A stretch of DNA of 64,000 nt. It comes from Mobula birostris. Its lineage: Eukaryota. A program made the translations under genes and the position numbers. The notes under the pieces were generated by a model that worked only from the letters and a program-made list of their open reading frames with translations, did no database searches and had not been told where the DNA came from. This document shows, in pieces, positions 18,231 through 60,084 of this stretch; the first letter of the stretch is position 1, and the number at the start of each line of letters is the position of its first letter. The DNA lies in contig NC_092383.1 in NCBI RefSeq assembly GCF_030028105.1, positions 97,983,604-98,047,603 on the forward strand. The letters are read 5' to 3'.

Positions 18231-18805
18231 TCTCTCTGTAATCCCCTCCGGCCGCTGCACTCACCCATCTCTCGGTAATACGCTGTGGCCCCTACGCCCG
18301 TCCCGTCTCTGTGAAACCCCTTCTGGCCCCTATACCTATCCATCTCTCTGTAACCCCCTTCAACCCTAACATTCATTCATTTCTCAGTAACCCCACTTTG
18401 GCCCAGACAGCACAGTCCTTCCATCAATCGATCTCTCTGTAACACCCTCTGGCTCCTATACCTATCCATATCTCTGTAACCCCTCCAGACCCTACACCCA
18501 CTCATCTCTCTGCAACCCCTTCCGGCCTCTACACCCATCCATCTCCCTGTACTGCCCTCCAGCCCCTACACCCATTATATTTATGTAATCCCCTCCGGCC
18601 CCTATAAATATCCATCTCTCTGTAACTCCTCCAACCCTAACATTCATTCATTCATTTCTCAGTAAAAAAACCCCACAGGCCATCCATCCATCCATCCAAA
18701 TCTGTGTAGCACCCTCTGGCCCTGTACCCATCCATATCTTAGAAAACTTGCTGCAGCCCAACAACAGCCAACAGCAGAATGGTTTGGGGAAATACTGTAT
18801 TGGAG

Positions 18806-18811
18806 TTTATT
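18806..18811 (-). terminator. Candidate polyadenylation signal AATAAA, gene half B
   Basis: tttatt on the plus strand, orthologous to 11202-11207. Confidence 0.4.
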
Positions 18812-19359
18812 ATAAAGCAGACAATCTCACTTAGTAAATATAAAGCAATTGTACAAGCTGGAAATCTCTAGCAAAATCAGGAACTGCTGGAAGCCTGAGG
18901 CAGGTCAGGCAGCATCTGTGGAGAGAGACGTGTGTGACCTGAAACATTAACTCTCCACAGATACTGGCCAATCCACTAAATCCGACAATGCACAGTTAAA
19001 AAATATGCCCTCTGCCCAATACCCCATCAGCAGGCTCTCTGGCTGAAAGCGTGAACTGGTTCATGTTGGCAGGGAGTGCACAATATTAACAATAAACCAC
19101 TTGCAGTGTGTGGCCGTCCACAGCCCCAGAATCATGGGAGGGGCTTCACAGGACCGCTCACAACATCCGACATCCTGGGTTTTGCACAGACTCCACCCTC
19201 GGCTCCAACCTCTGGGACTGTCCTTCAGGATGTCAATGGTTAATCGGGCAATGAGAATTGGAAGGGATGTCCCGGGAGGGATTGTGGGATGGGGAACAGG
19301 AAGTTACAGTGTGGGGGCCGCAGTACATTGTGAAGCTCAGTGTGACTGATCAGCTGGGG

Positions 19360-20660
19360 CTAACAAGTTTATCAAAGGGAAAACAGCTAACTGAAGGTGT
19401 TATATTTGAATGCACGCTGCATGCAAAATAAGATAGACGGTCTTGTAGCACAGTTAGAGATGACAGGTATGATGTTGTTGGCATCACTGAGTCATAACTG
19501 AAAGTTATTGTTGGGAGGTTAATATCCATGAATACACATTGTATTGAAATGACAGGCAGGTAGGCAGAGGGTGAAGCACAGCCTGTTGATAAAAAATAAA
19601 TCATATCCTTGAAAAGAGGTGACATGGGATTGGAAGATCATTGGATAATTAGAAAGAGACAAGAAGTATGAATACAGTGAACATTTTTGATTGGCTGCTG
19701 CTGGCAAATTGTGTTCCAACAGGTAGCGATGTTGGGACTTATTCTTTTAACGTTGCGTATCAATGATTTCGATGATGGAATTGATGGCTTTGTGGGCAAG
19801 TTTGTGGATGATATGAAGGTAGTTAGAGGGGCAAATAGTGTTGCAGAGGCAGAGAGGCTGCAGAAAGATTTGGACAGATGAGGAGACTGGGCAAAGAAGT
19901 GCCAGATGAAACATTGTGTTGGGAACTAAGTGGTCATACACTTTGGGAGGAGGAATAAAACGGTAGACTATTTTCTAAACGGGGAGAAAATTCGTAAATG
20001 CAAAGTGCAAAGGGAATACAACCACAAACAAGAGTAACTCTGCAGATGCTGGTGATCGAAGGAACTCATCTATGGAAACGAGTACAATTGATGTTTCAGG
20101 CCAAAACCCTAGAGACATGTGATTCCTTGTGCAGGATTCTCTAAAGGCACTTCTCTAAGAAAAGATGTGCTGACATTGGAGAGGGTTCAGAGGAGGTTCA
20201 GAAAATGTTTCTGGACTTGAGAGTCTGATCATATGAGCAGCATTTGATAGCTCTGGAACAGTACTCACTGAAATTTAGAAGAATGAGGGAGGACCTCATT
20301 CTAACCTATTGAATGTTGAAAGTACTAGATAGACTGGATGTGGAGAGGATGTTTCTGATTGTGGGAGAGTACAGGACTAGAGGTCACAATGTCAGAATAG
20401 AGAGATGTCTATTTGAAAAGGAGATGAGGAGGAATTTCTTTAGCCAGAGGGTATTCCTTCTGTGGAATTTGTTACCATTGATGGCTTTGGAGGCCAGATC
20501 ATTGAGTGTATTTAAGGCTGAGGTTGATAAGTCTGGGCATGAAAGATTATGTGGTGAAGGCAGAAGAATGGGATTGAGAGGGAAATGGACCAGCCTTGAT
20601 CAAATATTGGAGCTGCTTGATGGGCTGAATAGCCTGATTCTGCACCAATGTCTTGTGGTC
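19360..20660 (+). mobile_element. CR1 RT fragment (arm B copy)
   Basis: ORFs 19687-19881 and 20313-20663 with CR1 RT and 3' motifs. Confidence 0.88.
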
Positions 20661-21178
20661 TGAATGACTTTACCCAGGTAGGTTAGGAGAAGAGTAAAAA
20701 GGTGAGAACATGAACAGAGCATTCTGTGATGACAGAGTGTGGGGACTACCTGGGGATGTGTGGGGATGCTGGGGAATGAAGTAGGCACAGGATTTCGAGT
20801 GGGGACACAGTAGAGGATACTGACAGAGGACAAGAAAGTTGTAGATTCTGAGGATAAGAGTCAGGAGGAAAGGTGGGCAGTGTTAGATCTGAGCAGCAGG
20901 GAGGAAAAGGAGGGAGAGTCAGGTGGACGAGTAGTGGACATGGGCCTGTGTGCAGTAGAAAGGATCCCAGATCCAGGAGTGGGGTTATTAGAACCCACAG
21001 TATATAAGGCAATTTGGAATTGTTGAACAAATGCAGGGGTTGCAGTAAAGGGGAGGACCACCCCCTACACACACCCTCTGTGCTTGCGGGGCCAGGAGGG
21101 TGTGGGCAACTTTTCCCAGTGATTGGGTTTGGAGAGGTACTTGCTGTCCTGATGGAGGGGGTATCTGTGAGCTGGGTT

Positions 21179-21243
21179 CTATTCCGGGGCATTAGTTGCA
21201 GGCTCCTTCTTTTGATCTTCCAAAGGCTGGGTCTCCACTTGGC
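21179..21243 (-). CDS. Terminal cytoplasmic exon of gene half B (GQVETQPLEDQKKEPATNAPE*)
   Basis: Acceptor ctctgctctctatcccacag, phase 1, TAG at 21181-21179. Probably not translated if the upstream TAA is used. Confidence 0.55.
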
Positions 21244-22139
21244 CTGTGGGATAGAGAGCAGAGTTGAGGGCTTCCAGTCGTGATACTGATACCTGGCCTT
21301 CCCTCCACAGAATCTCCCAGTGACCCTCAACCTAAGATATGCTCATCTGGTCCCTACACATCCTCTGCAATGTCACCTCGACTGCCACAAATCACAACAC
21401 CCCGACTCCCTTCCTCATTCCCATCTCCACTGACATGTCCCATAAACCTCACTTTAGTTGCTCTGCTTCTATCTCTCACACTGGTCAATATCCCGCAAAA
21501 CATCACACCCACACAAGTCGAAGTCTCCCCACCACATCTCACAATTGGGTGTGTGAAGGACAGTAAATCCTGGTGAGTGGGTGTGTAGGGAACACTGTAC
21601 ACCAGTAACCAGTTATGAGGGGTACAGGGTACTCCAGTAACCACATGTATGGGAACAGTGTAACCCAGTGACTGGGTATGGGGACACTGTGACCCAGCGA
21701 CGGGGTGTGTGGGGACACTGTGACCCAGCGACGGGGTGTGTGGGGGACAGTGTACCCCAGTGACTGGAAATGTGTGGGGGACAGTGTACTCCAGTGACCA
21801 TGAGTGTGTGAGGTCAGTGTACCCCAGTGACTGGGAGTGTGTGGGGCCTGTGTACTCCAGTGACTGGGTGAGTGTAGGACAGAGTACCCAGTGACTGGGT
21901 GAGTGTAGGACAGAGTACCCAGTGACTGGATGTGTGTAGGACAGAGTACACCAGTGACTGGATGTGTGGGGATAATGAATCCCAGTGACTGTGTATTGGG
22001 GGGTACTCCAGTGACTAGGTGGGTGGGGGACAGTGTAACCCCAGTGACTGGGTGCGTGATGGGTTTAGCACCAGTTATATACCCAAATCGGGGTGAAAAG
22101 GAACAGGAAATGGGGTGTGCAAGATCGAGGAGTGTGGTC

Positions 22140-24540
22140 AGCACAATTTACTGCAGATCCATAAGACCATAAAATATAAGAGGAAATTTAAGACATTTAG
22201 CCCTTTGAGCCTGTTCCATCATTTATTTGTGGTTGGTTCCTTATGCAGCCCCATTCTCCTGCCTTTTCTCTGTAACCCTGAACTACTCTACCAATTGAAA
22301 ACCTTTTAATCTCATCCTTAAATTCCAGATTCCTGGCCTCTGGCTGAAAAAAAATTCCTTCTCACCTCAGTTCCAAAAGCACATCTCTTTATTCTGAGTC
22401 TGTGCCCTTGTGTCCTGGACTCTCCCACTGACAAACATCCTCTGCACCTTCATGTCATCCAGGCATTTCAGTACCTGTTATGATTTAGTGAATCCTTTCC
22501 ATCACCCTTCTGAGGTCCATCCTTTTCAGGCCCAAAGCTGCCAAGCACTCCTCATACATGAAGACTTCCACTCCTGTAATTATTCTTGTGAATATTATCT
22601 GGACCCTCTCCAGAGGCAGCACATATTTCCTTAGATACAGTACCCAAATTGTTCACAATATTCCATATGGGGTCTAAGCAACTCCTTACAAAGCCTCAGC
22701 AGTTCGTTCTTGCTATTATATCCACACCCTTCCAAACTAAATACTAACAATGTAGTTCCCTTCCTTAATACTGACTCAACGCAAATTGTCGGTCCATTTC
22801 GTTCCAGGCTACAATTTTATTCCTCCTCTCAGAGTGCATAAACCCTCATTTCTAAAAATTGTCTTCTTTGACTATTCTCCCAACCTCTCCAAGTCCTGCA
22901 GCAGACTCGACTCTGTGCCTCAGTGACACCAACTGTACCTCCGGGCTATCTTGATCCTGATATATCCACAATGCCATCTGCTCCTTCATCGAGACCATTC
23001 ATGTGTAATGTGAAAAGGTGCCGTCCCAGCCCAGAACCCTTTGATACTCCATTGGTCTGTGGCAGGTGTTCAAAAAAGAGCATTTATATCCCCACTCTCT
23101 CTAACTTCTGCCAGTCAGACAATCTTCTATCCATGCTGTACCTTACCCACGATGCCATGGGCTCTTCAAAACATAAGAACATAAGAAATAGGAGCAGGAG
23201 TAGGCCATCCAGCCCATCGAGCCTGCCCCACCATTCAATAAGATCATGGCTGATCTGTTTGTAAACTCATCTCCATCTACCTGCCTTTTCCCCATAACCC
23301 TTAATTCCCTTACTGTGTAAAAACCTATCTAACTGTTTCTTAAATATATCTTGTGAGGAAGCCTCAACTGCTTCCCTGGGCAGACAATTCCACAGATTCA
23401 CCACTCCCTGGGAAAAACAGTTTCTCCTCATCTCCATCCTAAATTTTCTCCCCTGAATCTTGAGGCAATGTCCCCTAATTCTCGTCTCACCAACCAATGG
23501 AAACAACTTTCCTACTTCTATCTTATCTATTGTTTTCAAAATTTTGTATTATCTTGTTTAATAGCCTCATGAGTGTAACTTTGTCAGATACCTTGTGAAA
23601 GTACTTGTAAATTGCTGGAGCTTACTCTCTTTTCTCTAGCTGGCCTGTTACGTTCTCAAATAATTAGAACAAAATTGTGCGAACTTCACCCTGTTTTATC
23701 GCCTGCTTCCAAGTATCCCGAAATTTCATCTGATATAATCTATTTTAAAACCTTCCCAATTGCCAAGGTCAAGCTAACTGTCTACTAGGGTTCAGGTGTT
23801 ATTCAACCCTATTGTACAGTTCATCCTTCCCCAGAGCAGATCCCAATGATCCAGAAATCTGAAGAGGTGATGATAGGAGCTACAGTGGAGGTAGTAACCC
23901 CCAAGTTGCAGGAGGCAGGTAAGTGGGTGACTGTCAGAAGACAGGGAAATGTGCAGCCAGTACAAAGTACCCCTGTGGCCATTCCCCTCAATAATGATGA
24001 TACCTTGTTGGATGCTGTTGAGGGGGATGACCTACCGGAGTGGGGGGAAGGGGTGACAGGGGAGGTACCACCATGACCAGGTCTCTAGACTCTGGAGCTA
24101 AGGCCCAGAAGGGAATGGAGGAGAAGACTGCAGTAGCAGTAGTGATCGGGGATTCCATAGTTAAAGAAGTGCACAAGTTATTCTGTGGACGTAATAGACA
24201 CCGGGATGATATGTTGATTCCCAGGTGCCATGGTCAGTGACATCTCAGATCGAGTCCATGGCATTCTAAAGGGAGAGGGTCAGCATCCAGAAGTCTTGGT
24301 ACAAAATAGGATCATTGGGCAGAGAACTGTGCACCTGAGAACTGGTGCAGGGGGCAGGGATCAGATTTCTGGATCAAAAAGATCTCTGCTGGGGAATCTA
24401 TGACCTGTTCCAAAGGGATGGGTTGCACCCGAATCCAAGGGGAACCAATATCCTTGCAGGCAGTTCGCTAGAGATGTTGAAATTTTCTTCTACATTACTG
24501 GATAATTTACCCTTGTATTTAATCTTTTTTGCCTTATTGG
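22140..24540. mobile_element. CR1 ORF2 (minus) and ORF1 (plus) fragments, arm B copies
   Basis: ORFs 23267-23539 and 24040-24240 are paralogous to the arm A CR1 pieces. Confidence 0.85.
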
Positions 24541-25230
24541 TTTTAAAATTGTTCTCCACTCAGTCTTAAAAGCTTCCTACTAAACTTCACCATATTGTAA
24601 GCCTCCTTTGCTTTGCTTTTATGCTGCACCTGAATCCTTGTCCTCTCCATAGAGTGAGGGTCCAACCCCACTGGGACTGTGGAACAAGAATGGAAGTTCC
24701 ACTGGGATGGAAACCCACTCCCAACCTCCTCACTCTGCATTGGGTGTGGGCTCCATTACCCAATAACTGGGTCTGTGGAGAGGTACTAGATGTCCAGGTG
24801 AAGGGAGTGGCTTGTGTTGCAGTCTTCCTCAGTGGCTACATGTGAGCCGGGGACACCCTCCTGCGATGCTGGCATCTGTGGTCTCTTTCAAGAGAGTCTG
24901 GGCTTGGTGTCTCACTTGGTGGGGGAGGGGGGATACCAGAACCCAGACTGATCCACTGTTCAGCCCTGATGTCCCCACCGAGTCAATGGGACAGAGTGCA
25001 GTCGCCAACTCCTTTCCCCCAACTCCTCTGCACATCCCTTTACCCAGTTCAAATCCTCCTCCAAAACCTCAGACTCTTGCCCCAGCCTGAACCTTATTCC
25101 TGAGGTGGGATCCCATGTCCTCAGGGTCGGAATGGGAGACACTTGCCTGCAGACCCAACCCCTCCTGCTGCTGTTCCTGGCCAGAGTTTCTGGTGCCGGG
25201 TTATTTTTTGGGGGTGGGGGAGACACCTAC

Positions 25231-25401
25231 CGTCAGATGTACCGGATTTCTTTCCTTTACTTTAGTCCCCATGTGAGCGAGGTTCACGTGGTTTTTTGAA
25301 GAGTTTATAACAAACCAGATACAGAATGAACACAATGACGATCACGCTGAGGATCACGACAGCAATCTTCCAACCATTGTATGATGTTCTGAGATCTGGA
25401 T
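25231..25401 (-). CDS. Transmembrane exon, gene half B (DPDLRTSYNGWKIAVVILSVIVIVFILYLVCYKLFKKPREPRSHGD*) with premature TAA
   Basis: Same acceptor and donor as the 4002 exon, 171 nt. AAA(Lys) in arm A is TAA at 25264-25262. Confidence 0.75.
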
Positions 25402-26899
25402 CTGGGGAGGATAAAAGATTCTGTCATTAATCCCATCCTCACACTCCCAGTGACAAGGAATCGATGGATCCAGTCCATCCCACCACAGGCCAGAGAAAAC
25501 TCCCTGTCACTGCAACACTGTGCCTCAGTCCTCTTTAAACAGCCCCACATCACTCTGCTCCCTCATCACTCCACTCCATATTGTCCCTTCCAATTGTAGT
25601 CTCCAATGTCTCTGACAGTATCCTCAATGATGTTAGTCCAGCACCCTCACTCAGACCCTCAGTAACCCCTCTCCCCCAGCACACTCTGACTGACTGGCTG
25701 CTTCTAGTACGAAACGGTGACACAGTCCTCCCACACTCACAGGACAGGAATTAGACACAGAGGCAAGCTCCGTTCGCACTGACCCATCACCCACTCGCAG
25801 AGCCTGAGTTAGTTGCAGGAATCTGCGCTCAGTCGGTATATGGAAGGCTGTGGAGATGCAGGGAGATGATCTGTCTCCCTTTGACTGATGCTGGTGGGAA
25901 AGAGGGGAGGGGGTAGTAGGTGGAGATGACAATGTTCTTTACACTCTAAAATTGGTGACTGTGGAATGAAATACTGTTGGTAGAGGCAGAAGATCACCTG
26001 GGTATGACCCTGAAAGAGTGTGATGGTAAAGTGCACAGCCCAGGTCAGCAGGGCCTCTCTGCATGAAGAAGATTGATTTTTATATCACAGGTTTTTGTGA
26101 GGCCTCAACAATCCTGGGTGAAGAGGCTGCACAACGTCAAAGACCCAGCACAGGACAGCAGGAACAGATCCCCCAACCCACACTTCCACTCCCTGCCCCA
26201 CCATAATTTATCTCTCCTCCCCTGCTCCCCTGTGTTGTTGTTACTGGATTGTACTGTGGTTGTATCTCCTAAGGCCTGTGAACCTGATGGATATCTCAGT
26301 CTCACCAGTGGTGGGACACTCCCATAGTTACATCAGTGTGGACCTGATGGTCATCTCACTGTCATCAGTGGTGGGACACTCCCATAGTTATATCACTGTG
26401 GACCTGGAGAACAGCTCATTCTCTCTGATGGTGGGACACTCCCACAATTACCACTGTGGACCTGATGGATATCTCTCACCGGCGGTGGTATCATTCCATT
26501 GCTACAACACTGTGTGCCTGCTGGACAACTCATTGTCTCCAGTGGTGGGACGTTCCCAGTTAGACCACTGTGGGTATGGGGGACAGATCAGTCTTTCTGG
26601 TGGTGGGACGTTCCACCAGTTACACCACTGTGGATGCAATGGATACCTCACTTTCTCCAGTGAGTGATTATCGGACACCCAGTGACATTGCAGCTTCATT
26701 CATTCGTATTGCACAGTCGCTGTTCAAACTGCTATGGAAGAGTGTGGAGACAAACTATGGTCACACCAACATGAACCTCAAAGTCTGTTTAAAGGGAATG
26801 GTTGAGGTTGTTGTCTCTTTTGCAACTGTCACAGCTTTGGAAAAGTAGTGTTAGACCGAGCTCAGCCTGACAATCGAGTTGATTATGTTGCTTGCCCTC

Positions 26900-29660
26900 A
26901 GGGGAACACATGTAATTAGGACATTGTAGCCATTAGGAAGACATGATTGCAGGAGGGGCAAGACTGGCAGCTCAATATTACGGGGTTCCGTTGTTTTAGA
27001 TGTGACAGAGTGGGAGGGATTAAAGGAGGAGGGCTGGCGTTACTAGTCAGAGAGAATATCACCGCAGAGCTCCATCAGGGTTGACTGGAGAACTTGACTA
27101 GTGAGGCGTTACGGGTGGAACTGAGAAATACAAAAAAAGAATGACCACGTTAGTGGGGCTAAATTACAAACAACCCAATAGTCCACAGGATTTAGAGGAA
27201 CAAATTTATAGAGAGCTTGCAGACTGTTGCCAGAAACACAAGGTTGTTATAGTAGGTGATCTTAACTTTCCACAGATTGGCTGGGAATCCCATACCGTAA
27301 AAGGACGAGATGGGATAGAGTTTGTCAAATGTGTTCAGGAAAGTTTCCTTCATCAGTGTGTAGAAGTCCCAACGAGAGTTGCTGATATTAATTCTGCTAT
27401 TAGGAAATGAGACAGGGCAGATGACAGAAGTTTGTGCAGAGGAACTCTTTGTATCTAGTGACGACAATGCCATTAGTTTCAAAGTGAATATACAAAGAGG
27501 TAGTCCAACCACAAACAAGAGAAAATCTGCAGATGCTAGAAATCCAAGCAACACCCACAAAATGCTAGAGGAACTTAGCCGGCCAGGCAGCATCTATGGA
27601 AAAGAGTACAGTTGACATTTCAGGCCGAGACCCTCAGGGTCGACGGTACTGTTTTCTTTAGGTGCTGCCTGACCTGTTGACTTCCTCCAGCATTTTGTCT
27701 ATGATGCAGATAGATCTGGTCTGTGAATTGAGATCCTAAATTGGAGAAAGGCCAATTTTGATGGTATCAGAAATTATCTGGCAAGTGTGGTTTGGGACAG
27801 GCTGTTTCTAACAAAGGTGTACTTGGAAAGTAGAAGGCCTTTAAAAATGAAATTTTGAGAATACAGAGATTTTATGTGCCTGTGAGAATAAAAAGTTAAA
27901 GATAACACGTGTAGGGAACTTTGGTTTTCAAGAGATCTGGAGCCCCTGTTTCAGAGATAAAAGGGGGTATATAGCAGGCATAGGCAAGTATGAACAAATG
28001 AGGTGCTTATGAAACACAAGAAATGCAAAGGAAGACTTAAGAAAGAAATTAGAAAGACTAAAAGAAGGTTTGAAGTTGCTCTAGCAGACAAGGTGAAGGG
28101 GAATCCTAAAGGATTCTACAGGTATGTTAAGAGCAAAAGGATTGCTAGGGACAAAATTGGTCTGCTGGAAGACCTGAATGGTAGTCCATGTGTGGAGCCA
28201 GAACGGATGGGGAGATCTTAAATGCCTTCTTTGCATCTGTATTTACTCCGGAGATGGATACACAGTCTACAGTAGTGAGCCATAGTGGCAACTGCATGGA
28301 TCCTCCACAGATTACAGAGCAGGAGGTGTTTGCCACCCTGAAACAAATCAGGGTGGATAAATCCGCATGACCCGATAAGCTGCTCCCTCGGATCCTATGG
28401 AAGCCAAGTGCAGAAATCTCCAGGGGTCTAGCAGAGATATTTAAATCACCCTCAGCGATAGGAGAGATACCAAAGGATTGGAGGATAGCCAATGTTGTTC
28501 CACTGTTTAAAAAAAGGCTGTAAGGGACCCAATATATAAGTAATTGGATAGATAGAAACATAGAAACATAGAGAACCTACAGCACAGTTCAGGCCTTTCG
28601 GCCCACAAAGTTGTGCCGAACCTGTCCTTACCTTAGAAATTACTAGGCTTACTTATAGCCCTCTATTTTTCTAAGCTCCATGTACCAAACCAAAAGTCTC
28701 TTCAATGACCCTATCGTATCCGCCTCCACCAATGTTGCCAGCAGCCCATTCCACGCACTCACCACTCTCTGATTAAAAACTTACCCCTGACATCTCACCT
28801 GTACATACTCCCCAGCACCTTAAACCTGTGTCCTCTTGGGGTAACCGTTTCAGCCCTAGAAAAAAAAACCTCTGACTATCCACACGATCAATGCCTCTCA
28901 TCATCTTATACACTTCAATCACGTTACCTCTCATCCTCTGCCGCTCCGAGGAGAAACGGCTGAGTTCACTCAACCTATTCTCATAAGGCATGCTCCCCAA
29001 TCCAGGCAACATGCTTGTAAATCTCCTCTGCACCCTTTCTATGGCTTCCACATCCTTCCTGTAGTGAGGTCACCAGAACTGAGCACAGTACTCCAAGTGG
29101 AGTCTGACCAGGGTCCTATATAGCTACAACATTACCTCTCGGCTCCTAAATTCAGTTCCATGATTGATGAAGGCCAATACGCTGTATGCCTTCTTAACCG
29201 CAGAGTCAACCTGCGCAGCTGCTTTGAGTGTCCCATGGACTCGGACACAAGATCCCTCTAATCCTCCACACTGCCAAGAGTCTTACCATTAATACTATAT
29301 TCTGCCATCACATTTGACCGACCAAAATGAACCACTTCACACTTTTCTAGGTTGAACTCTATCTGCCACTTCTCAGCCCAGTTTTGCATCCTATCAATAT
29401 CCCGCTCTAACCTCTGACAGCCCTCCACACTATCTACAGCACCTCCAACCTTTGTGTCATCAGCAAACTTACTAACCCATCCCTCCAATTCCTCATCCAA
29501 TTAATTTATAAAAATCACGAAGAGTAAGGGTTCCAGAACAGATCCCTGAGGCAATCCTCTGGTGACAGACCTCCATGCAGAACTTCACCCATCTACAACC
29601 ATACTTTGCCTTCTGTGGGCAAGCCAGTTCTGGATCGACAAAGCAATGTCCCCTTGGATC
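26900..29660. mobile_element. CR1 ORF2 fragments: plus-strand endonuclease/linker 26900-28530, minus-strand 3' end 28550-29660
   Basis: KGNPKGFYRYVKSKR..IGLLED, LNAFFASVFT, ELEGWVSKFADDTKVGG and EAIERVQRRFT motifs. Confidence 0.88.
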
Positions 29661-30850: not shown

Positions 30851-30859
30851 CTCTGGTTC

Positions 30860-47757: not shown

Positions 47758-47838
47758 TCTGCCGCCTCGCCTTGCCTCGGTTCCGCCGCCTCGCCTTGCC
47801 TCGGTTCCGCCGCCTCGCCTTGCCTCGGTTCCGCCACA
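47758..47838. repeat. 27-bp tandem repeat, about 3 copies (gccgcctcgccttgcctcggttccgcc)
   Basis: Read directly. Confidence 0.85.
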
Positions 47839-48195
47839 TCGAAATGCCTCCAATCCCAAAGGGAAGTTACAGACTACTGCGATGATCGTTTGCTAAAAGT
47901 GTGGTTAACAAAGTATTTAGTCGCTGTCATTGTTTCGTTAGCTGCCAACCAGAGATCGCAGAGGTTCACCAGCACCATCTTAACCTGAAGAAGTTACAAG
48001 TAAAACACAGATCCTTGTTCATTCTGCACTGTCCCACACACTCCTGAGATCGGACACAGAGAGGAGCTGTCTTGTTGAGCTGGGATTATGGGAGGAGAAA
48101 TCGAAAAGAACAGCTGAAGGCAACACTGGAAAATGGGGGAGAGTTTGGATTTCAGTGGACTGTAGTGATTTTCTTTGTGAAAGGATTATGATATG

Positions 48196-48655
48196 GATAG
48201 ATGGATAGATAGATAGATAGATAGATAGATAGACAGACATACTTTATTGATCCCGAGGGAAATTGGGTTTCGTTACAGTTGCACCAACCAAGAATAGAGT
48301 ATAAATATAGCAATATAAAACCATAAATAATTAAATAATAATATGTAAATTATGCCAGATGGAAATAAGTCCAGGACCAGCCTATTGGCTCAAGGTGTCT
48401 GACCTTACAAGGGAGGAGTTGTAAAGTTTGATGGCCACAGGCAGGAATGACCTCCTATGACGCTCTGTGTTGCATCTCGGTGGAATGAGTCTCTGGCTGA
48501 ATGTACTCCTGTGCCCAACCAGTACATTATGTAGTGGATGGGAGACATTGTCCAAGATGGCATGCAACTTGGACAGCATCCTCTCTGCAGGCACCACCGT
48601 CAGAGAGTCCAGTTCCTGGACAAGCTTTGCAGTGTGGTTCAAATCCCAGAAGGGT
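48196..48655 (-). mobile_element. Rex-Babar-like LINE 3' end with (TAGA)n tail (48196-48236)
   Basis: ERMLSKLHAILDNVSHPLH..SQRLIPPRCNTERHRRSFLPVAIKLYN. Confidence 0.82.
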
Positions 48656-51390
48656 CTATTCTGATGTTCTTTTGGCAGGTATTGGCTGCTCCCCAGCTCT
48701 GACAAAGGCAATGGTTTGTTTGGAGGGTCGGGACCGCTTCGCCCACTCAATTCCTGCACTAATGGCTTCAGCGATGGTCTTCAGGACCTGATCATGCCTC
48801 CATCGGTACTGTCCCTCACCAAGTGCCCTTGCGCAGCCGCTGAGGATGTGCTCCAGAGTTCCTCGCTTGGAGCACAGTGGGCATGCAGATGACTCTGCCT
48901 TCCCCATGTGGGCAGGTTTGATGGGCTTGGAAGCACATCGTACACTGTCTGTATGAGAAATTGGATGCAGTGTGGTTCGGCTTCCCAAAGCTCAGCCCAA
49001 TTCACTTTCCGCTCAACCGCATTCTCCCATCTTGTCCAAGCTCCCTGTTGCTTTATTCCCACCGCCTTGCAAGCTCTCATCTCCACCACTACTGCTCTCA
49101 CCTCCTCCTGAACTAGACAACGCCTTTCCTTCCCTCTGGTGTCCATTTGGGGAGTTGGAAAGGATCCTAGCCCAGCTCGGCCTCATGTGACCATTCCCAC
49201 CAGCCTCCTGTGACACAGCCTCGCCTCTGCCTCCTGAACAGATTCCTCTGCCCTCCACTTCCTGCCAGTCCTCACTTGGATCCCTGCTCTGGCCACCTTC
49301 GGGTCACTTGAGTCCCTATACTGTAGCACTTCTCTGGCTCTTGTTACCTTGAATTCTTCCTCCAAGGATTTGAAGGGCAATTGCGGTTTGTTGTGGTGTC
49401 CATAGAGTGCGATGCTGCTCAGGCTCTTTGGCAGCCCCAGCCATCTCCTGAGGTGGTTGCTAACCCTCCTCTCTAAGGTTTCGACTGTCGAGATTGAAAC
49501 TGTATAGAAGAGGAGGGGCCACAAGATTCTGGGAAGAATGCCATGCTGATACACTCAGGCTTTAAACTTCCCAGGTAGACCAGACTTGTCCACAGATTTC
49601 AGCCAGCCATCCAACTCAGTGCAAGTCGCCTGGATGGATGTCGTGTCCCTTAAAGAGCTGTCAAACACTTTGCCTAAGCTGTTGACTGGCTCTTCTGTGA
49701 TGGTTGGGATGGCTGTGCCTGCGATGCTGAACCGGAACTTGTTCTTCACCTTCCCTTTCCTCAGCACCATCGATCTTGATTTGGCAGGTTTGAAATGCAT
49801 CCGGGCCCACTCCACCAGCTTTTCGAGCCCTTGCAGAATCCTCCGGCAGCCTGGGACTGATTCTGTGGTGACTGTGAGGTCATCCATGAATGCCCTGAGA
49901 GGTGGTTGTCGTTGAGCGGAATTCATTCTGAGCCCTCTGCACTCTGGTTCAGCAGACTTAGTGAGCATATTCACGGCTAGGGAGAGCAGTGTCACTGAGA
50001 TAGTGCACCCTGTGATGATGCCGATCTCCACCTTGTGCCAGGTTGATGTAATTGCTCCTGAAGAGACCCTCAGCCTGAAGTTGCAGTAATAATCAGCGAT
50101 AAGGTCTCTGATTCTGCTGGGGACGTGATATTTGGTCAGTGTGAGCTGCACCAGCTTGTGCGGAATAGAGCCATATGCATTTGCCAGGTCGAGCCACAAC
50201 ACTGTCAGGTTGCCCTTGTTCTCTCTGGCCTCCCTGATGAGCTGTGTCACCACACCGATGTGCTCCAGACAGCCCGGCATCCCTGAAATGCCACCCTTCT
50301 GGACTGATGTATCAATATAGGTGTTCTTTGCTAGGTAGGTGCACAGCTGGTTAGAAATGGCACTGAAGAAGATCTTCGCCTCGACACACAGCAGGGAGAT
50401 GAAACGAAACTGGTCTATCTGGGTGGCATTTTCCTCCTTCGGGATCTACACCCCTTCAGCTACTCTCCACTGTCTTGGGATATTTCCCCTTCTCCAGAAG
50501 ATTCTCAGGATCTTCCGCAGATGCAGCAGGAGTTTGGGGCAGTTCTTGTACACTTTTTACGAGGTGTTGCTTGGTCCTGGAGCCGAGCTTGCCCTTGCTT
50601 TGCGGACGACCTCTCTGACTTCCTTTAGTTGCAGCTCTGACATGTCGAACTGCACCTCCAGTTCAGGTGGGTCTATTAGGATGTTGCACTCTCCCAACTC
50701 CTGCTCTCTTTCAGGATCATTATATATCTTCTTCAGATGTTGGTCTATGTCTTCCTGCGAACAGGCCAGTTTCCCACTGCGCTTCTCCCCCAGCAACTCC
50801 TTAGTGAACTCGAAGGGGTTGGCGATAAAGGCAGCACGTTTTTGGGCCCTTTCACGACGCCGCCTCTGATGCCACTCTGCCCGGCGGAGGACCCCGATCT
50901 TCTTTCGTAGTATGCACATCAGCTGGGCCAAGCCAATGCGCTCCTCTTCTCCTGCCTCCTTGTATTGGGACTTCAGCGCTTTCATCTCCTGCCTGATGTT
51001 GTGGATCCTCAACGCTCTTTGGTTCTTCGAGTAAGGTGTATTGGAGCCTTCCTTCTCCTCTTCTCCGAACCGTTCCGCTGCAATGCTGACAATGACTGTT
51101 GTCATGGCTTGCAGCTTCCTATCGACCCCTCCCTTCACCATTGCCTCCGGAATTTGGTTGACATCTTCATCACCTGTCCCTACACCTCCTCTCTTGCCAC
51201 AATTCAGGGCCCCAAACAGTCCTTCCAGGTGAGGCAACACTTCACTTGTGAGTCTTGCTGGGGTCATCTATTGCATCTGGTGCTCCCGGTGCGGCCTCCT
51301 CTACATCAGTGAAACCTGACGCAGATTGGGGGACTGCTTCATCGAACACCTCTGCTCCGTCCCCACAACAGACAGGATCTCCCGGTAGCC
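48656..51390 (-). mobile_element. RLE-type non-LTR retrotransposon (R2 superfamily, HERO-like), truncated and frameshifted
   Basis: RT motifs WLDLANAYGSIPH, GIITGCTIS, AFMDDLT. C-terminal CPLC..TLEHILSGC zinc knuckle and WRHD motif. The PD-(D/E)xK core is missing, cut by the Rex insertion. Confidence 0.85.
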
Positions 51391-52874
51391 ACCCAGTTCA
51401 ACTCTGCTTCACATTCCCATTCAGATATGTCCATACATGGCCTCCTCTACTGCCATGATGAGGCTAAACTCAGGTTGGAGGAGCAACACCTCATATACCG
51501 TCTAGGTAGTCTCCAGCCCCTTGATATGAATATAGAATTCTCCAACTTCCAGTAATTCCCGCCCCCTCACTTCCCCTATCCAAATTTCACTCTGCCCCCA
51601 CCTTCAGCTGCCTATCACCTCCCTCATGGTTCCGCCTCCCTCTACTACCCATTGTGTTTCCCCTATTCCTTCTTCACCTTTCCTGCCTATCCCCTCCCTG
51701 CTTCCCCTCCCCTGCCCCTTTATCTTTCCCCTTACTGGTTTTTCACCTGGAATCTACCAGCCTTCTCCTTCCCACCCTCCCCCCACCTTCTTTATAGGGC
51801 CTCTGCCCCTTCCCTCTTCAATCTTGATGAAGGGTTCCGGCCTGAAACATTGACTCATCGTTTCCACGGATGCTGCCCGACCTGCTGAGTTCCTTCAGCG
51901 TGTTGTGAGTGTTGCTTTGACCCCAGCATCTGCAAAATATTTTGTGTTTACTCATAGTCATTCGTTCGTTGCCTGGTTCTGATCCCATTGTGTCTGTCCG
52001 ACGGGGGTGCTCATCCTCCACCCCCCCCACCTCTCGGGCACCCCTGGGGGTATCATTCCCTTCGATTCATCGAGCTTTTGTGGGGGTCCTCCTCTCAGAG
52101 GACACAGATTGGGTTGCCAGCCCGTTCTGCCCCAATTATTGTGAAAGTGATATTACTGTCAGAGTGAGTCAGGAACCATATTGGTGTGTGTGAGTGTGCA
52201 GTTGTGTCCGTGTACTGTGTCACTCACTGGGACACTATATTCAGTGTAATGAATACACAGGGTCTCACTCACCACAGACCAGCATGAAGACTGAGGAATC
52301 AACACCTTGCTGAGCTCAGACCTCAGTCTGGGGAATAAACAAGCAGTGCCTTCTGAAAATGGGATCCCTGAACATGACAGACCAGCACTTTGACCTGGGG
52401 ATAGGGAGGGATCTGTTTAACTGACCCACAGATATAGACTGTTCAGCCCATCGACCAGTCCCTCCCACCAGATCAGCCTATCTCCCGTTCCCTGTTCCCC
52501 ATCTGCTCAGCTCCTCCAGCATCGGAGTCACGGGGTTCCCCATTGGCAGTTCGATGCTTCACAGCCTCTGGTCCAGTCTCCGGGGATGTGGTGAGTGTGT
52601 CCTCCAGACTCACACTGACTCAGCCTCCCTACACTGGGACCGTGAGCCCAGCTCTGGACATGGGCAGTCAGTGGGTTCAGTAAACATGGGAACACACAGG
52701 ATCTGCCCTCACCCATTAATTGGGGTGTTTCAGGGACCGGTAAAACCCCCTCCCCTGCCGTCCCCCACCGCGGTGTCTCACTCACCGTACACCTCTAGGA
52801 TCTGCCCTCACCCATTAACTGGGGGTGTTTCAGGAACTGATGAAGCCCGAGCCCCTCTGCAGTGTCTCACTCAC

Positions 52875-53195
52875 CGTACACCTCCAGTCGCATTCTGTTC
52901 TGAGTCTGTGCTCGTGAACTTGCTGTAACAGTCACCTCATAATCACCAGTGTCCTCTCTCTGTAGATCACGGATTTCCAGACTGAAGCTCCCGGGATGAA
53001 GAGTTATCCGTCGCTTGTACTCCTCAGATCCATAATAGTCACTGATCTTGTTTGCATAGGTCACTATCTTCACCCTGGGTGACATCCGTCTCCACACAAG
53101 CTGAGCAATGTCCGGTCCAACTGGGATCCCAGGATGTAAGGAGACCGACAGTCCCCGAGTTCCGTTCACAGTGGTCGGGGAATCCCCAGTCCCAG
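52875..53195 (-). CDS. IgV-type exon (CD2/SLAM/CEACAM-N-like, no cysteine), V3
   Basis: Acceptor ctcctcttgtctcctcag, donor G|gtgagt. 321 nt, phase 1-1, open. Motifs VNGTRG.SVSL, LVWRR, KRRITL..FSLEIRDLQREDTGDYEVTV. Confidence 0.88.
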
Positions 53196-53552
53196 CTGAG
53201 GAGACAAGAGGAGACAGTCAGCAGGTGAATTCAGTAACGGTAGAATCAGAGCCGGGAGAATCACAGTTACAGGAGCAGGCCATGCGGCCCATCATCTGAT
53301 TCCCGACCCTGAGAGAAACCCGGCACACAGTTCCTACATCACACAGTGAGCCCACCGGGGGAACAGAGTGAAGACACTCCACACCCAGCCCTGAGGAAGG
53401 GAGTTGCAGCCTGCAGCCAGATATCGATTGTCATGACAGGGAGGCAGAGACATGGCAAATGGGCTCCAGTCTGGAGAAAAGGTTTGTAGTGTTTGGAGAG
53501 AGTGAAGACAATGAGGGAATACGGGAAATCACCGACTACACTGTCCGTTCAC

Positions 53553-53574
53553 CCACTCCCAGTGCACAGGTCAT
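53553..53574 (-). CDS. Candidate leader exon end (..SFILY MTCALGV, phase 1) for V3
   Basis: Donor G|gtgaac. Hydrophobic frame continues into AGTGDSP. True start uncertain. Confidence 0.35.
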
Positions 53575-54189
53575 GTACAGAATGAAGCTCGTCCACACTG
53601 TGCTTCTGCAGAGGTCGACCGGCGGGCACTGGTCCTCTCGGCTGATCCTGACAACTGGTTCTTCACAGTGACGTTGTTGGATTAAGGTCTACAATTTTTA
53701 TTTTTTAATTGTCCTTTTTCTTGTGGTTTTAGCTTTGTTTGTTTGAGTTTATATTTGAATTATCACCTGTTTGTCAACTTTTAGTAAATGTGGTATCTTT
53801 GGTTCTAGCTTCCTGTGGGGGGAGAGGAAAGAGAACTGGCTGGAAGATGGTGGGTGGTCAGGTGGCTGGGGAAAGATAAAGATGAGAAAATCTGAAGATG
53901 CTGGAAATCCGAACAACACTCACAAAATGCTGGAGGAACTCAGAATCCCAGGCAGTATCTATAGAAAAGAGTGAACAGTCGATGTTTCGGGCCGAGACCC
54001 TTCATCAGAGAAAGGAAAGGGGCTGGAGAAGAAGGTATCTGATAGGAGAGAACAGAGGGTAATGGGAGAAGGGGAAGAGGACGGGCATTTCTGTTTCAAA
54101 GGGACATCATTGTGTTTTGAGGCTGTGCCCTGTGGTCAAAGGCACACCCCCCATTTGAAACATCCTCTCCAAGTCCATCTGTTTCGGTC

Positions 54190-54830
54190 TTTCAATATTC
54201 AGAATCAGAATCAGGTTTATTATCACCGGCATGGGTCGTAAAATTAGTTAACTTAGCAGCAGCAGTTCAATGCAGTACGTAATATAGAAGGAGAAGAAAA
54301 ACAAGTAAAATAATAATAATAAATAAGTGAATTAATTTACGTATATCTATATAGAATAGATTTAAATAGTGCAAAAACAGAAATAAATATATTTTAAAAA
54401 GTAAGGTAGTGCTCACTGGTTCAATGTCCATTTAGGAATCGGATGGCAGAGGGGAAGAAGCTGTTCTTGAATCGCTGAGTGTGTGCCTTCAGGCGTCTAT
54501 ACCTCCTGCCTGATGGTAACAGCGAGAAAAGGGCATGCCCTAGGTGTTGGAGGGCCTTAATACTGGACGCTGCCTTTCTGAGACCCCGCTCCTTGAAAAT
54601 GTCCTGGGTACTTTGTAGGCTAGTGCCCAAGATGGAGCTGACTAAATTTACAATTTACAATCCTTTGCAGCTTCTTTCAATAGGTTTCAATGATATTCCA
54701 CCACACAACCCCTTGTCATTCTCCAAATCTACAGGCCCAGAGCAATCAATTATTAACTCTTTCATCTTCTTGGGCCCTTACCTCGCAAAGAAGCGTAGGC
54801 TATCAATGAACTCCCATCTCCATCACCCTC
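54190..54830 (-). mobile_element. Rex/L2-like LINE 3' fragment (paralog 60040-60085 + 61450-62030)
   Basis: HALFSLLPSGRRYRRLKAHTQRFKNSFFPSAIRFLN. Confidence 0.8.
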
Positions 54831-54949
54831 TATGCTGAGCCAGATCTCAAGGTTGGACCAGGCGTGTCCGCATCATCTAACTTCAGCCTCAACATCTCTC
54901 CCCTATGTGTTTACCAAATAAAGCTTCCAAAGAAAGGTGAGTTTTGAAC

Positions 54950-55450
54950 CTTTGAGAACAATGGAATATTTCTCTCTATGTCAACTTCATCACTACAACA
55001 AAACCTTCGATACTTAGACACAAACACCGTATGGAAACTGATGGAACATTATGGAATATCACAGAAATTTGTCAATATCTTTAGGAACTCTACAACATGT
55101 CATGCAAAGTCATACATGTGGGAAAACTGGCAGAAAGCTTCAATATCAACACTGGGGTGGAGCTGGAATGTTTGGGTCCTTTCCTGTTCCTGTTGGCAAC
55201 AAACTAGATAATGAAACAGACAACAAGTGAAAAATGAAATGGATCCAGTGGATTCTGTGGCAGCAACTTGATCACTAAGAGTTTGCAGACAACATCACTC
55301 TACTGTTTAGTTCGAACCAACAGATGCAAGAGAAATCAGCACTCTTGACTGCTAACTCCACCACGTTGGCTCTGAGACCAAACGGAGATGAAACAGAAGA
55401 GATAAAGATAAACTGCACCAGCAACAGACCCATAGGGATGAGAGATACAA
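54950..55450 (+). mobile_element. RTE-clade LINE RT fragment
   Basis: TVWKLMEHYGISQKFVNIFRNS motif. Confidence 0.6.
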
Positions 55451-56601
55451 CCCTGGAAGAACCCTTTCATTGCCGAGATAATTCTCATGGCTAGGGTTAA
55501 ATTCAGGGATTTCTGGGTTGCATGGCTCAAAGTCCCGGAAGGGACTATTCCCTGCTGTATCTCAAATAAAAAGTCTCTAATACCAGAGATGGTTCCTTTA
55601 AAGTGACAGGGGTAAATTCAAAGGAGAAGTGTGGGGCAAGTTTTTCTTCACACAGAGAGTGGGGGTGGGAGCCTGAAATGGGCTGTCTGGAGTGGTGGTA
55701 GAGGCAAAGGCCAGAGAGACTTTTGAGAGGCTGTCACATACACACATGAATGTCTAGAGAATAAAGGCATATGGAACATGAACAGTCAGAAGGGATTAGC
55801 TTAACTGGGTTCCATTAGCAATGAGTTTGGCAGCACATCATGAGCTGAGGAGCTGTTCCTGTGATGTTTCATTCCCCACGTTCTGACGTTCTCCTCACTC
55901 CAATGGGACCCGTTAAACCTGGGGTGGAGGAGATTTCTCAGACAGACGTTGCTGAGTGAGATTATTGTGAATGTGATATTACTGTTAGAGTGAGTCAGGA
56001 ACCATATTGCTGTGTGTGAGTGTGCTGTTGTGTCCGTGTACTGTGTCACTCACTGGGACACTAATTTCAGTGTAATGAATACACAGGGTCTCACTCAACA
56101 CAGCACAGCATGAAGGCTGAGGAATAAACACCTTGCTGAGCTCAGACCTCAGTTTGGAGAATTAACAAGCAGTGCCTTCTGAAAATGGGATCCCTAAACA
56201 TGACAGACCAGGCCTTTGACCTGGGGATACAGAGGGATCTGTTGAACTGACCCACAGATAAAGACTGTTTGGCCCATCCACCAGCCCCTCCCACACTTTC
56301 GGCCCATCTCCCAATCCCGCACACCATCTGCTTATCTCCTCCAGCCTCAGAGTCATGAGGTTCCCCATTAACAGTTTGATGCTTCACAGCCTCTGGTCCA
56401 GTCTCCGGGGATGTGGTGAGTGTGTCCTCCAGACTCACACTGACTCAGCCTCACTACACTGGGACCATGAGCCCAGCTCTGGACACGGGCAGTCAGTGGG
56501 GCTCAGTAAACAGGGGAACACACAGGATCTGCCCTCAGCCAGTAATTAGGGGTGTTTCAGGAACCGGTGAAGCCCGAGCCCCTCCACAGCACCTCACTCA
56601 C

Positions 56602-56904
56602 CATACATCTCCAGTCGCATTTTGTTCTGAGTCTGTGTTCCTGAACTTGATGTAACAGTCACCTTATAATCACCAAAGTCCTCTCTCTGTAGATCACGGA
56701 TTTCCAGACTGAAGTTCCCGGGATGAAGAGTTATCCGTTGCTTGTACTCCTCAGGACCGAAGTAGGAAATGACTCCATTTGCATATTCTGCTATTGTGGT
56801 TCTGTCTCTTCTCCACACCACCTGAGAAACGTCCAGCCCGCCTGTGATCCCAGCAGGTAGGAAGACCAACTGTCCCCAAGCTCTTGTCACGGTCCCCATT
56901 CACT
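56602..56904 (-). pseudogene. IgV-type exon V2 with in-frame TGA as second codon
   Basis: Canonical cag acceptor (56907-56905) and G|gtgagt donor, 303 nt. Reads (x)AG TGA ATG GGG ACC.. then an open V domain (VVWRR..KQRITL..DLQREDFGDYKVTV). Confidence 0.75.
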
Positions 56905-57611: not shown

Positions 57612-57900
57612 GGGTGGCACGAATGGGTAGTGGTTAGCACAACACTTTACAGTACCAGTGAACCAGACTGAATTCCCGCTGCCCATAAGGAGTTCGTACA
57701 TTCTCCCCGTGTCCACGTGGGATTCCCCTGTGTGCTCTGGTTTCCTCCCACAGTCCAAGGACATATCAATAGCATGGTTAATTGGTCATTATAAATTGTC
57801 CTGTGATTAGGCTGGGTTACGATCGTGGGATTGCTGGGCAGTGTGGTTCAAATCCCGGAAGGGACTATTCCCTGCTGTATCTTGATAAAATTTTTAAAAA
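57612..57900 (+). mobile_element. tRNA-derived SINE, V-SINE/HE1-like
   Basis: ggtagtggttagcacaac head; ctccccgtg..gtttcctcccacagtccaagga core. Confidence 0.75.
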
Positions 57901-58733
57901 ATCAAATAAGAGGAGTCCAATACCAGAGATTGTGCATTTACAGTGACAGGGGTAAATTCAAAGGAGATGTGCAGGGCAAGTTTTTCTTCACACACAGAGT
58001 GGTGGGAGCCTGAAATGGGCTTTCAGGAGTGGTGGTAGAGGCAAAGGCAAACCTGTTAAACCTGGGGTGGAGGAGATTTCTCAGACAGACGTTGCTGTGT
58101 GAGATTATTGTGAATGTGATATTACTGTTAGAGTGAATCAGGAACCATACTGCTGTGTGTGAGTGTGCTGTTGTGTCCGTGTACTGTGTCACTCACTGGG
58201 ACACTACATTCAGTGTAATGAACAGACAGGGTCTCACTCAGCACAGCACAGCATGAAGGCTGAGGAATAAACACCTTGCTGAGCTCAGACCTCAGTCTGG
58301 GGAATTAACAAGCAGTGCCTTCTGAAAATGGGATCCCTGAACATGACAGACCAGGCCTTTGACCTGGGGATACAGAGGGATTTGTTTAACTGACCCACAG
58401 ATATAGACTGTTTAGCCCGTCCACCAGTCCCTTCCACCATGTTAGCCTATCTCCCGTTCCCTGTTCCCCATCTGCTCATCTCCTCCAGCCTCGGAGTCAC
58501 GAGGTTCCCCATTGGCAGTTTGATGCTTCACAGTCTCTGGTCCAGTCTCCGGGGATGTGGTGAGTGTGTCCTCCAGACTCACACTGACTCAGCCTCACTA
58601 CACTGGGACCGTGAGCCCAGCTCTGGACACAGGCAGTCAGTGGGGTTCAGTAAGCAGGGGAACACACCGGATCATTAATTGGGGTGTTTCAGGAACTAAT
58701 GAAACCCGGGCCCCTCCGCAGCATCTCACTCAC

Positions 58734-59054
58734 CGTACACCTCCAGTCGCATTTTGTTCTGAGTCTGTGCTCCTGAACTTGCTGTAACAGTCACCTCATA
58801 ATCATCAGAGTCCTCTCTCTGTAGATCATGGATTTCCAGACTGAAGCTCCCGGGATGAAGAGTTATCCGTCGCTTGTATTCCTCAGATCCGTAATAGTCA
58901 CTGATCTTGTTTGAATATGTCACTATCTTCAACCTGGGTGACAACCGTCTCCACACAAGCTCAGCAACGTCCGGTCCGATTGGGATCCCAGGATGTAAGG
59001 AGACCGACTGTCCCCGAGTTCCGTTCACAGTGGTCGGGGAATCCCCAGTCCCAG
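58734..59054 (-). CDS. IgV-type exon (CD2/SLAM/CEACAM-N-like, no cysteine), V1
   Basis: Same splice sites as V3. 321 nt, phase 1-1, open. Confidence 0.88.
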
Positions 59055-59411
59055 CTGAGGAGACAAGAGGAGACAGTCAGCAGGTGAATTCAGTAACTGT
59101 AGAATCAGAGCCGGGAGGATCACAGTTACAGGAGCAGGCCATGCGGCCCATCATCTGGCTCCTGACCCTGAGAGAGACCCGGCACACAGTTCCTACATCA
59201 CACAGTGAGCCCACCGGGGGAACAGAGTGAAGACACTCCACACCCGGCCCTGAGGAAGGGAGTTGCAGCCTGCAGCCAGATATCGATTGTCATGACAGGG
59301 AGGCAGAGACATGGCAAATGGGCTCCAGTCTGGAGAAAAGGTTTGTAGTGTTTGGAGAGAGTGAAGACAATGAGGGAATACGGGAAATCACCGACTACAC
59401 TGTCCCTTCAC

Positions 59412-59433
59412 CCACTCCCAGTGCACAGGTCAT
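59412..59433 (-). CDS. Candidate leader exon end (MTCALGV, phase 1) for V1
   Basis: Donor G|gtgaaggg, conserved with unit 1. True start uncertain. Confidence 0.35.
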
Positions 59434-60084
59434 GTACAGAATGAAGCTCGTCCACACTGTGCTTCTGCAGAGGTCGACCGTGGTACTGGTCCTCTCGGCT
59501 GACCCTGACCACTGGTTCTTCACGGTGACGTTGTCGGATTAAGGTCTACAATTTTTATTTTTTAATTGTCCTTTTTCTTGTGGTTTTAGTTTTGTTTGTT
59601 TGAGTTTATGTTTGAATTATCACCTGCTTGTTAACTTTTAGTAAATATCGTGTGTTTGCTTCTAGTTTTCTCTGGGGGGAGGAGAAGGAGAACTGGCTGG
59701 AAGATGGTGGATGAAGTCAAGTAGGTGGGGAATGGTAAAGATGAGAAAATATGCAAGTGCTGGAAATCCAAGCAACACACACAAAATGCTGGAGGAATTC
59801 AGCAGGCCAGGCAGCCTCTATGGAAAAGAGTAAACAGTTGTTGTTTTGGAAAGAGTCCCCTCACCGGAGAATGGAAAAGGGCTAGAGAGAAGGTATCTGA
59901 TTGGAGAGAACAAAGGGCAATGGGAGAAAGGGAACAAGGAGGGGCAATTATGTTTCAGTTATGTTTTGAGGCTGTGCCCTGTGGTCAAGGACACCTCCAC
60001 TACAGGGAACTTCCTCTACACGTCCATCTGTCTGAGTCTTTTAATATTCAAAATCAGAATCAGAATCAGGTTTATTATCATTAC

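Follow-up and report, generated by a model that had tools for sequence, protein, structure and literature searches.

The window analyzed here is a stretch of 64,000 nt from the manta ray Mobula birostris, without runs of N, which carries on its minus strand the exons of a receptor of the immunoglobulin superfamily (IgSF). Three V-set exons (V1, V2 and V3), a transmembrane (TM) exon and a terminal coding exon (TM-C and tail-C) follow each other on this strand, and a leader-like element lies ~160-275 bp upstream of V1 (L1) and of V3 (L3). A second TM exon with its own tail (TM-B and tail-B) is located further downstream in one arm of an inverted duplication, the other arm of which holds TM-A and tail-A. 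Domains were called with Pfam and by sequence searches of the PDB, an AlphaFold (AF2) model of V3 was produced, and its fold was compared using Foldseek. Exons were sought by tblastn, and relatives were collected by a HMMER search with the V3 exon followed by a second search and a cluster look-up. The features are collected in Table 1.

Table 1. Exons and duplicated segments of the receptor locus and its surroundings in the 64,000-nt window of M. birostris.
Feature	Positions	Strand	Description
L1	59193..59329	minus	leader-like element, from acceptor ttttctccag/AC to TAG 59195-59193 in the frame homologous to relatives
V1	59054-58734 (321 nt)	minus	a-type V-set exon, phase 1-1, open, cysteine-free
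V2	56904-56602 (303 nt)	minus	b-type V-set exon, phase 1-1, in-frame TGA 56902-56900
V3 unit of tandem duplication	52135..54831	minus	partner 58104-62035, split by repeat 60086-61444
L3	53334..53470	minus	copy of L1; identical acceptor; TAG 53336-53334
V3	53195-52875 (321 nt)	minus	a-type V-set exon, phase 1; in RefSeq isoforms X1 and X2
TM-C	46675-46523 (153 nt)	minus	stalk, transmembrane segment, start of tail
tail-C	45907-45855	minus	terminal coding exon, end ...LNSRPGGEHSS-stop
Alternative terminal exon	44215-44064	minus	open, good acceptor
B arm of inverted segmental duplication	18227..27422	minus	copy of 1827-11774, 3' half of gene A
TM-B	25401-25231 (171 nt)	minus	TM exon of the other subfamily (P0168/P0161 type), in-frame TAA 25264-25262
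tail-B	21243-21179	minus	short tail exon, open, GQVETQPLEDQKKEPATNAPE-stop, located past the TM-B stop
TM-A	4002-4172	plus	intact TM-B counterpart in the other arm
tail-A	8623-8687	plus	counterpart of tail-B

All three V exons were called as V-set domains by Pfam, with E values of 1e-8 to 9e-7. None of them encodes a cysteine, which means that the B-F disulfide of the canonical V-set is absent. Each is bounded by canonical AG/GT sites, with a pyrimidine-rich acceptor before it and a GTGAGT donor after it. The lengths of V1, V2, V3, TM-C and TM-B are multiples of three and all of these exons are in phase 1. The strong acceptors and GTGAGT donors imply that V1-V3 behave as internal exons rather than as exclusive first exons, and because the V exons are symmetric phase-1 exons their skipping leaves the message in frame. 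A tree of 60 V domains placed V1 and V3 in the a-type clade of first-position domains with a support of 100/99, and V2 with the second-position b-type domains of the M. birostris protein P0161 and the M. hypostoma protein P0162. With tblastn no fourth V exon was detected in the window, nor any V exon in the region from 59.3 to 64 kb, and C2-bearing queries (P0002, P0007, P0168, P0206 and P0013) revealed no C2 exon in the window.

The second codon of V2 is TGA, and the junction reads E-stop-M-GTVTRAWGQ. In the intact paralogues P0161 of M. birostris and P0162 of M. hypostoma the same position reads E-W-M-GTVTRAWGQ, with TGG for the tryptophan. Judged from this comparison, the stop in V2 amounts to a TGG to TGA nonsense change. 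Selenocysteine insertion or programmed read-through at this codon was considered and set aside, as nothing supported it and the paralogues have TGG there.

RefSeq already has an annotation of the locus, as a single gene in the order V2>V3>TM-C>tail-C. Joining 56899-56602, 53195-52875, 46675-46523 and 45907-45855 reproduced exactly the M. birostris protein XP_072135129/130 (P0205, isoform X1, 274 aa), and the recorded coding sequence (CDS) span of 11,045 nt corresponds to 56899..45855. The same joining with the TM acceptor at 46587 in place of 46675 gave exactly XP_072135131 (P0165, isoform X2). The start codon of the RefSeq CDS is the ATG at 56899, directly after the V2 TGA, and the resulting N-terminus MGTVTRAWGQ... 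has no signal peptide. This start looks like the choice of the longest open reading frame (ORF) on a transcript of which the upstream frame is closed by the TGA. V1 was absent from the annotated M. birostris proteins of 216-686 aa in the family search.

The closest relative of TM-C and tail-C is the M. hypostoma protein P0160, with 84% and 88% identity, respectively, and a nearly identical cytoplasmic part. The ending of tail-C is common to this protein and the stingray protein P0001, and the conserved tail sequence can be written as WDKxMGKKSGTS...LNSRxGGEHSS. The cytoplasmic tail, IYRKREYLHSHWDKRMGKKSGTSDEPAVMFLNSRPGGEHSS, was found to contain no immunoreceptor tyrosine-based switch motif (ITSM, TxYxxV/I). 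The alternative terminal exon is 90% identical to the C-terminus of the M. birostris protein XP_072135126 (P0163, isoform X4 of a paralogue), and by this similarity the gene may have two alternative tails. Use of the internal acceptor at 46587 (tatatag/AAAGAGG) in RefSeq isoform X2 leads to loss of the TM segment and a shift of the reading frame; the TM exon is likewise read out of frame in isoform X1 of M. hypostoma LOC134355364.

The leader-like elements L1 and L3 are 98.7% identical, and the first base after the acceptor is 59329 in L1 and 53470 in L3. The leader ORFs that were proposed in a first-pass annotation of this DNA, 59293-59215 for L1 and 53434-53356 for L3, use a frame that differs from the homologous one and end at the donor CCG/GTGGGC, which is non-consensus. 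Read in frame 0, L1 and L3 share 90% and 86% identity with the C-terminal 59 residues of isoform X3 of M. hypostoma LOC134355364 (P0207), in which the corresponding segment is spliced after b-type V exons and is thus internal. These alignments suggest that L1 and L3 are counterparts of the internal M. hypostoma segment and not signal peptides. The best 9-residue hydropathy of the leader candidates is 1.4-1.5, compared to 1.9-2.8 for family signal peptides. The latter have the form MWMVSSLLCVAAWVARVA/G or MVSPLLCVAVWVTCVA/G, of which L1 and L3 hold mere pieces scattered across frames, with VSSLC in one frame and RVWSVFTLFPRWAHCVM-stop in another. Where the relatives have their ATG start codon, L1 and L3 have GTG. 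A six-frame Smith-Waterman search of the window for an intact family signal peptide, using six queries that covered two leader types, returned noise only.

V1 and V3 belong to tandemly duplicated units, 58104-60063 matching 52135-54214 with 91-93% identity. Past the repeat inserted at 60086-61444 the match resumes and extends to 62035 and 54831, respectively, with 82% identity. The V1 and V3 exons differ at 16 of 321 nt (5%), and the ratio of nonsynonymous to synonymous substitution rates (dN/dS) is 0.97, a value of low power since it was computed from just 16 differences. The exon is no more conserved than its flanks, the identity being 96% in the intron and 90-93% further out. On the opposite strand, an ORF of 70-74 aa is kept in both duplicated upstream regions (59318-59542 and 53459-53671, plus strand); it has no Pfam match.

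The V domains of this locus resemble those of the CD2/SLAM family. The best PDB matches by sequence were SLAMF6, CD48, CD84 and CD2. The AF2 model of V3 had a predicted local distance difference test score (pLDDT) of 92, and the top structures in the Foldseek comparison were 2B4, CD48, CD84, NTB-A and CD2, with TM scores of ~0.75-0.84. The cysteine-less V-set with a CD2-like fold and the coding of each domain by one phase-1 exon are both features of CD2/SLAM proteins; the membrane-proximal C2 domain and the ITSM are both missing. The ITSM is also absent from CD48, CD58 and CD2. The HMMER search with the V3 exon retrieved ray proteins with 2-3 V stretches, for which RefSeq gives names such as 'Ly-9-like', 'SLAM family member 5/8-like' and 'CD48-like'. 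The family is annotated only automatically and some of the names ('unc-89-like', 'NCAM2-like') are misleading. Our search of the literature on CD2/SLAM genes in cartilaginous fish found nothing relevant, and no paper on a batoid all-V SLAM-like family was found.

Among the relatives, the Hemitrygon stingray protein P0001 (392 aa) has the organization leader-V-V-V-TM-tail with the same tail ending, ...GGEHSS. Between three and five serial V domains without a C2 domain are present in M. hypostoma LOC134355361, -363, -364 and -365 and in M. birostris P0161, and the same TM segment and tail follow 3-5 V domains in Hemitrygon P0001, Hypanus P0155, and the Mobula proteins P0158-P0162 and P0210. The isoforms of LOC134355363 and LOC134355364 (P0210, P0158, P0209, P0208, P0160 and P0207) have 3, 4 or 5 V domains, from which it follows that the number of V exons varies both within and between genes of the family. 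Several of these isoforms end frame-shifted, truncated or in leader-like sequence. An a-type V exon is used internally in other genes as well, as domain 2 of LOC134355363 and as domain 4 of LOC134355364 isoform X1 (P0208), where it comes after b-type V domains. In isoform X2 of the latter gene (P0160) the module with the a-type exon is skipped, giving a clean protein of the type L-Va-Vb-Vb-TM-tail. Serial use of these V exons is the norm in the family.

TM-B and tail-B belong to an inverted duplication of 9.9 kb, in which 1827-11774 on the plus strand matches 27422-18227 on the minus strand with 85-92% identity. The 3' end contained in the two arms belongs to another subfamily, with a TM segment 'DPDLRTSYNGWK...' and a tail '...QKKEPATxAPE' as in P0161, P0168, P0206 and P0153. 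The TAA codon in TM-B is AAA in the sister copy TM-A. No Ig or other ectodomain exon was found by tblastn upstream of TM-B in the B arm. By all appearances TM-B and tail-B are a partial, disabled copy of the 3' half of a neighbor gene and not a second constant region, and they would be inert.

Several further observations concern these TM and tail exons. TM-A has two donors, a proximal one (AAA A/GTAAGG) after 4142, which is the site of the TM-tail join in P0168 and P0206, and a distal one (G/GTAGGT); the TAA of TM-B is upstream of both donor positions (25261 region). Between the two TM subfamilies, the 107 bp of intron before the TM exons (46672-46778 compared with 25398-25504 and 3899-4005) share 92-93% identity. 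The TM-coding core is only ~50% alike and contains an 18-nt indel, and the last 25 nt with the donor are conserved again. This pattern suggests that the flanks underwent gene conversion or that the TM core changed rapidly. The tail exon 21112-21243, or 8623-8754 in the other arm, is read in two frames in the M. hypostoma proteins P0007 and P0153, and the TM exon is missing from one of the two. An artefact of annotation or an isoform that skips the TM exon would seem to account for this.

The introns and intergenic stretches of the locus are filled by ORFs for reverse transcriptase (Pfam RVT_1), at 49558-50280 (minus) and 40501-41118 (plus), and by a repeated retroelement fragment found at 13357-14702, 28552-29668 and 60086-61444. 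The last of these copies interrupts the upstream region of the V1 unit relative to the V3 unit. Tandem arrays occur in the TM-C/tail-C intron (30-bp unit, 46003-46280) and at 35821-36225 (45-62-bp unit), and a 31-bp tandem unit is present in both inverted arms (21546-22058 and 7293-7923).

Much of what the first-pass annotation described agrees with these results. Its five junction positions (58734, 53195, 52875, 46675 and 25401) are exact exon ends, and the V and TM exon junctions are indeed all in phase 1 and splice-compatible. It had noted that no TM exon is present between V1 and the second leader-like element and that TM-B has no ectodomain exon; both statements were borne out by tblastn, which located none upstream of TM-B. 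The label of CD2/CEACAM-like IgSF receptor is consistent with the Pfam V-set calls, the PDB matches and the Foldseek comparison. The proposed order on the minus strand holds for the three V exons, TM-C, tail-C, TM-B and tail-B; the two proposed leaders have an acceptor, a TAG codon and an internal match in M. hypostoma. TM-C and TM-B are on one strand as described, and a third unit, TM-A/tail-A, is on the plus strand.

We consider it most probable, at roughly 0.65, that the window contains one decaying multi-V SLAM-like gene with duplicated exon modules, together with a dead fragment of a neighbor gene. The minus strand from 45.8 to 59.3 kb would be a single transcription unit, belonging to a branch of the CD2/SLAM family that is specific to rays. 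Proteins of this branch would have an ectodomain that consists of a string of cysteine-less V-set domains without a C2 domain, and a short conserved tail without a tyrosine switch motif. V1, V2 and V3 would be serial exons of this unit, V2 being the second-position (b-type) domain and V1 and V3 representing two copies of a module that consists of a degenerate leader (leader-prime) and an a-type V exon. In the counterpart gene of M. hypostoma, too, a 'leader-prime plus a-type V' module is located after the b-type V exons and before the TM exon. The module is thus likely to be left over from a tandem-gene fusion or internal duplication older than the two Mobula species, and neither V1 nor V3 is demonstrably the true first exon of the gene.

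In this gene the leader part of the module appears degenerate, with no ATG at the start position of the relatives, a TAG codon and a poor hydrophobic core. The degenerate leader and the TGG to TGA change in V2 together imply that no set of exons in the window yields a signal-peptide-bearing full-length receptor. Since the exons present in this assembly cannot encode such a receptor, the gene copy is read as transcribed but decaying, and a transcribed, decaying member of the family is probably what this sequence represents. The signal-peptide exon may sit beyond 64 kb or may have been lost. Pseudogene features are found in the TGA of V2, in the dN/dS of 0.97 between V1 and V3 (of low power, as noted), and in the B arm, which has a TAA and no ectodomain exons. 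The order of the duplication events is inferred; the process itself is ordinary gene duplication and decay. Intact members of the family would engage in CD2/CD48-like trans-binding through their V domains, and because neither an ITSM nor an immunoreceptor tyrosine-based inhibition motif (ITIM) is present, an adhesion or ligand-type role is suggested rather than SAP-coupled signaling.

The first-pass annotation favored a different organization, in which V1 and V3 have their own promoters and are spliced combinatorially to TM-C or TM-B, in the manner of the protocadherin and UGT1A clusters. It is true that all junctions are in phase 1, by which each combination is in frame up to the stops, and that the V-exon number varies among RefSeq isoforms of relatives. 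In protocadherin and UGT1A loci, however, the variable exons are promoter-bearing first exons without an acceptor, one of which is chosen per transcript. V1, V2 and V3 each have a 3' acceptor, by which V exons are added in series instead of being exclusive, and RefSeq joins V2 to V3, a junction that was missing from the earlier list. TM-C and tail-C are intact and lie downstream of the V exons, whereas TM-B is broken by its TAA, was copied from the 3' end of another gene, and is located 21 kb past tail-C with its poly(A)-type signals. Moreover, there are just two 'variable' units and these are near-identical recent copies. The only likeness to the protocadherin and UGT1A systems is that several similar upstream units on one strand are followed by TM and tail exons with in-frame compatibility; the V exons of the manta gene are internal and serial, and the supposed second constant region is a dead duplicate. 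We give such promoter-bearing cassettes very little credence. The simpler alternative that was mentioned at the same time, partial gene duplicates, was essentially right and has to be supplemented with the annotated V2>V3 joining.

A rival reading is that of two units with separate promoters. L3-V3-TM-C-tail-C would then be expressed from an internal promoter as a functional single-V type I receptor of ~201 aa, and L1-V1, with the dead V2, would be a partial duplicate of the 5' part that has either no product or a small secreted V domain as its product. The two leader ORFs are both open and in phase 1 with products in frame, at least ~1.3 kb of upstream sequence is duplicated with each unit, and single-V family members exist in M. 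birostris (P0011 and P0012). Yet the hydrophobic core of the leader-like peptide is poor and its donor deviates from the consensus. The element is also preceded by an acceptor of its own, its homologue in M. hypostoma is an internal segment and no leader, and the RefSeq models splice V2 to V3 while none starts at L3. This makes two separate units unlikely. About as doubtful is a functional, longer receptor in which an intact leader and first V exon are located beyond 64 kb, V1-V3 are all internal and the TGA reflects either a null allele or a mistake in the assembly. Such a gene would fit the M. hypostoma counterpart, which has a CDS spanning 29 kb, compared to 13 kb here from V1 to the stop, isoforms with up to 4-5 V domains, and a cytoplasmic tail (P0160) almost identical to the one encoded here. 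On the other hand, the family search returned no M. birostris protein containing V1, the RefSeq CDS starts inside V2, and the 59.3-64 kb region yielded no V exon.

Some points weigh against a single decaying gene. The leader ORFs, with ATG at 59293 and 53434 and donors at 59215 and 53356, are open, phase-compatible and the same in both copies, and an internal promoter at L3 that gives L3-V3-TM-C is possible. The true first exons may lie past 64 kb, and the TGA in V2 could be an allele or an error in the assembly. A dN/dS near 1, obtained here from 16 differences, is also typical of diversifying immune receptors. The RefSeq models may in part be based on homology to proteins, and both the degeneration of the leader and the orthology to M. 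hypostoma LOC134355364 (84-88% identity, TM and tail) are deduced from protein comparisons.

The retention of the module in two Mobula species raises the thought that it is used, with one locus producing receptors of differing ectodomain length by regulated choice of exon modules. The module could then provide an internal promoter or first exon for a one-V membrane form, or be included as a V exon in multi-V forms. A third possible role is that of an alternative terminal exon, from which soluble forms lacking the TM segment would result, as with M. hypostoma isoform X3. We regard such regulated use as quite improbable.

Viewed as a decaying multi-V gene, the locus can be compared to several known systems. 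The V domains of the SLAM/CD2 family (2B4/CD244, CD48, CD84, NTB-A and CD2) share the V-set fold without the canonical disulfide and the use of one phase-1 exon per domain, whereas the manta gene has no membrane-proximal C2 domain, 2-5 serial V domains and a tail without TxYxxV/I. In Ly-9 (SLAMF3) the ectodomain was similarly enlarged through internal duplication of Ig exons in one gene. Ly-9 repeats V-C2 pairs and signals via ITSMs, whereas the manta gene repeats V exons alone and the ITSM is absent. The CEACAM/PSG genes and the amphibian CD2/SLAM expansions are likewise fast birth-and-death families with partial copies, pseudogenes and variation in exon number, but the manta family belongs to the batoid lineage and has an all-V architecture. 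For the amphibians, PMC4536121 cites a lineage-specific expansion of CD2/SLAM genes in Xenopus (Guselnikov et al. 2011).

A cassette-type receptor locus in a cartilaginous fish would, if true, be a striking parallel to the protocadherins; the evidence says that it is not one. The locus is instead a worked example of birth-and-death evolution, with duplication of modules, a probable gene fusion, nonsense decay and an inverted partial copy. The locus itself is an unexceptional representative of a known family in a variant form that has received little study, and the missing C2 domain and the conserved tail without known motifs of this variant merit study at the level of the family.

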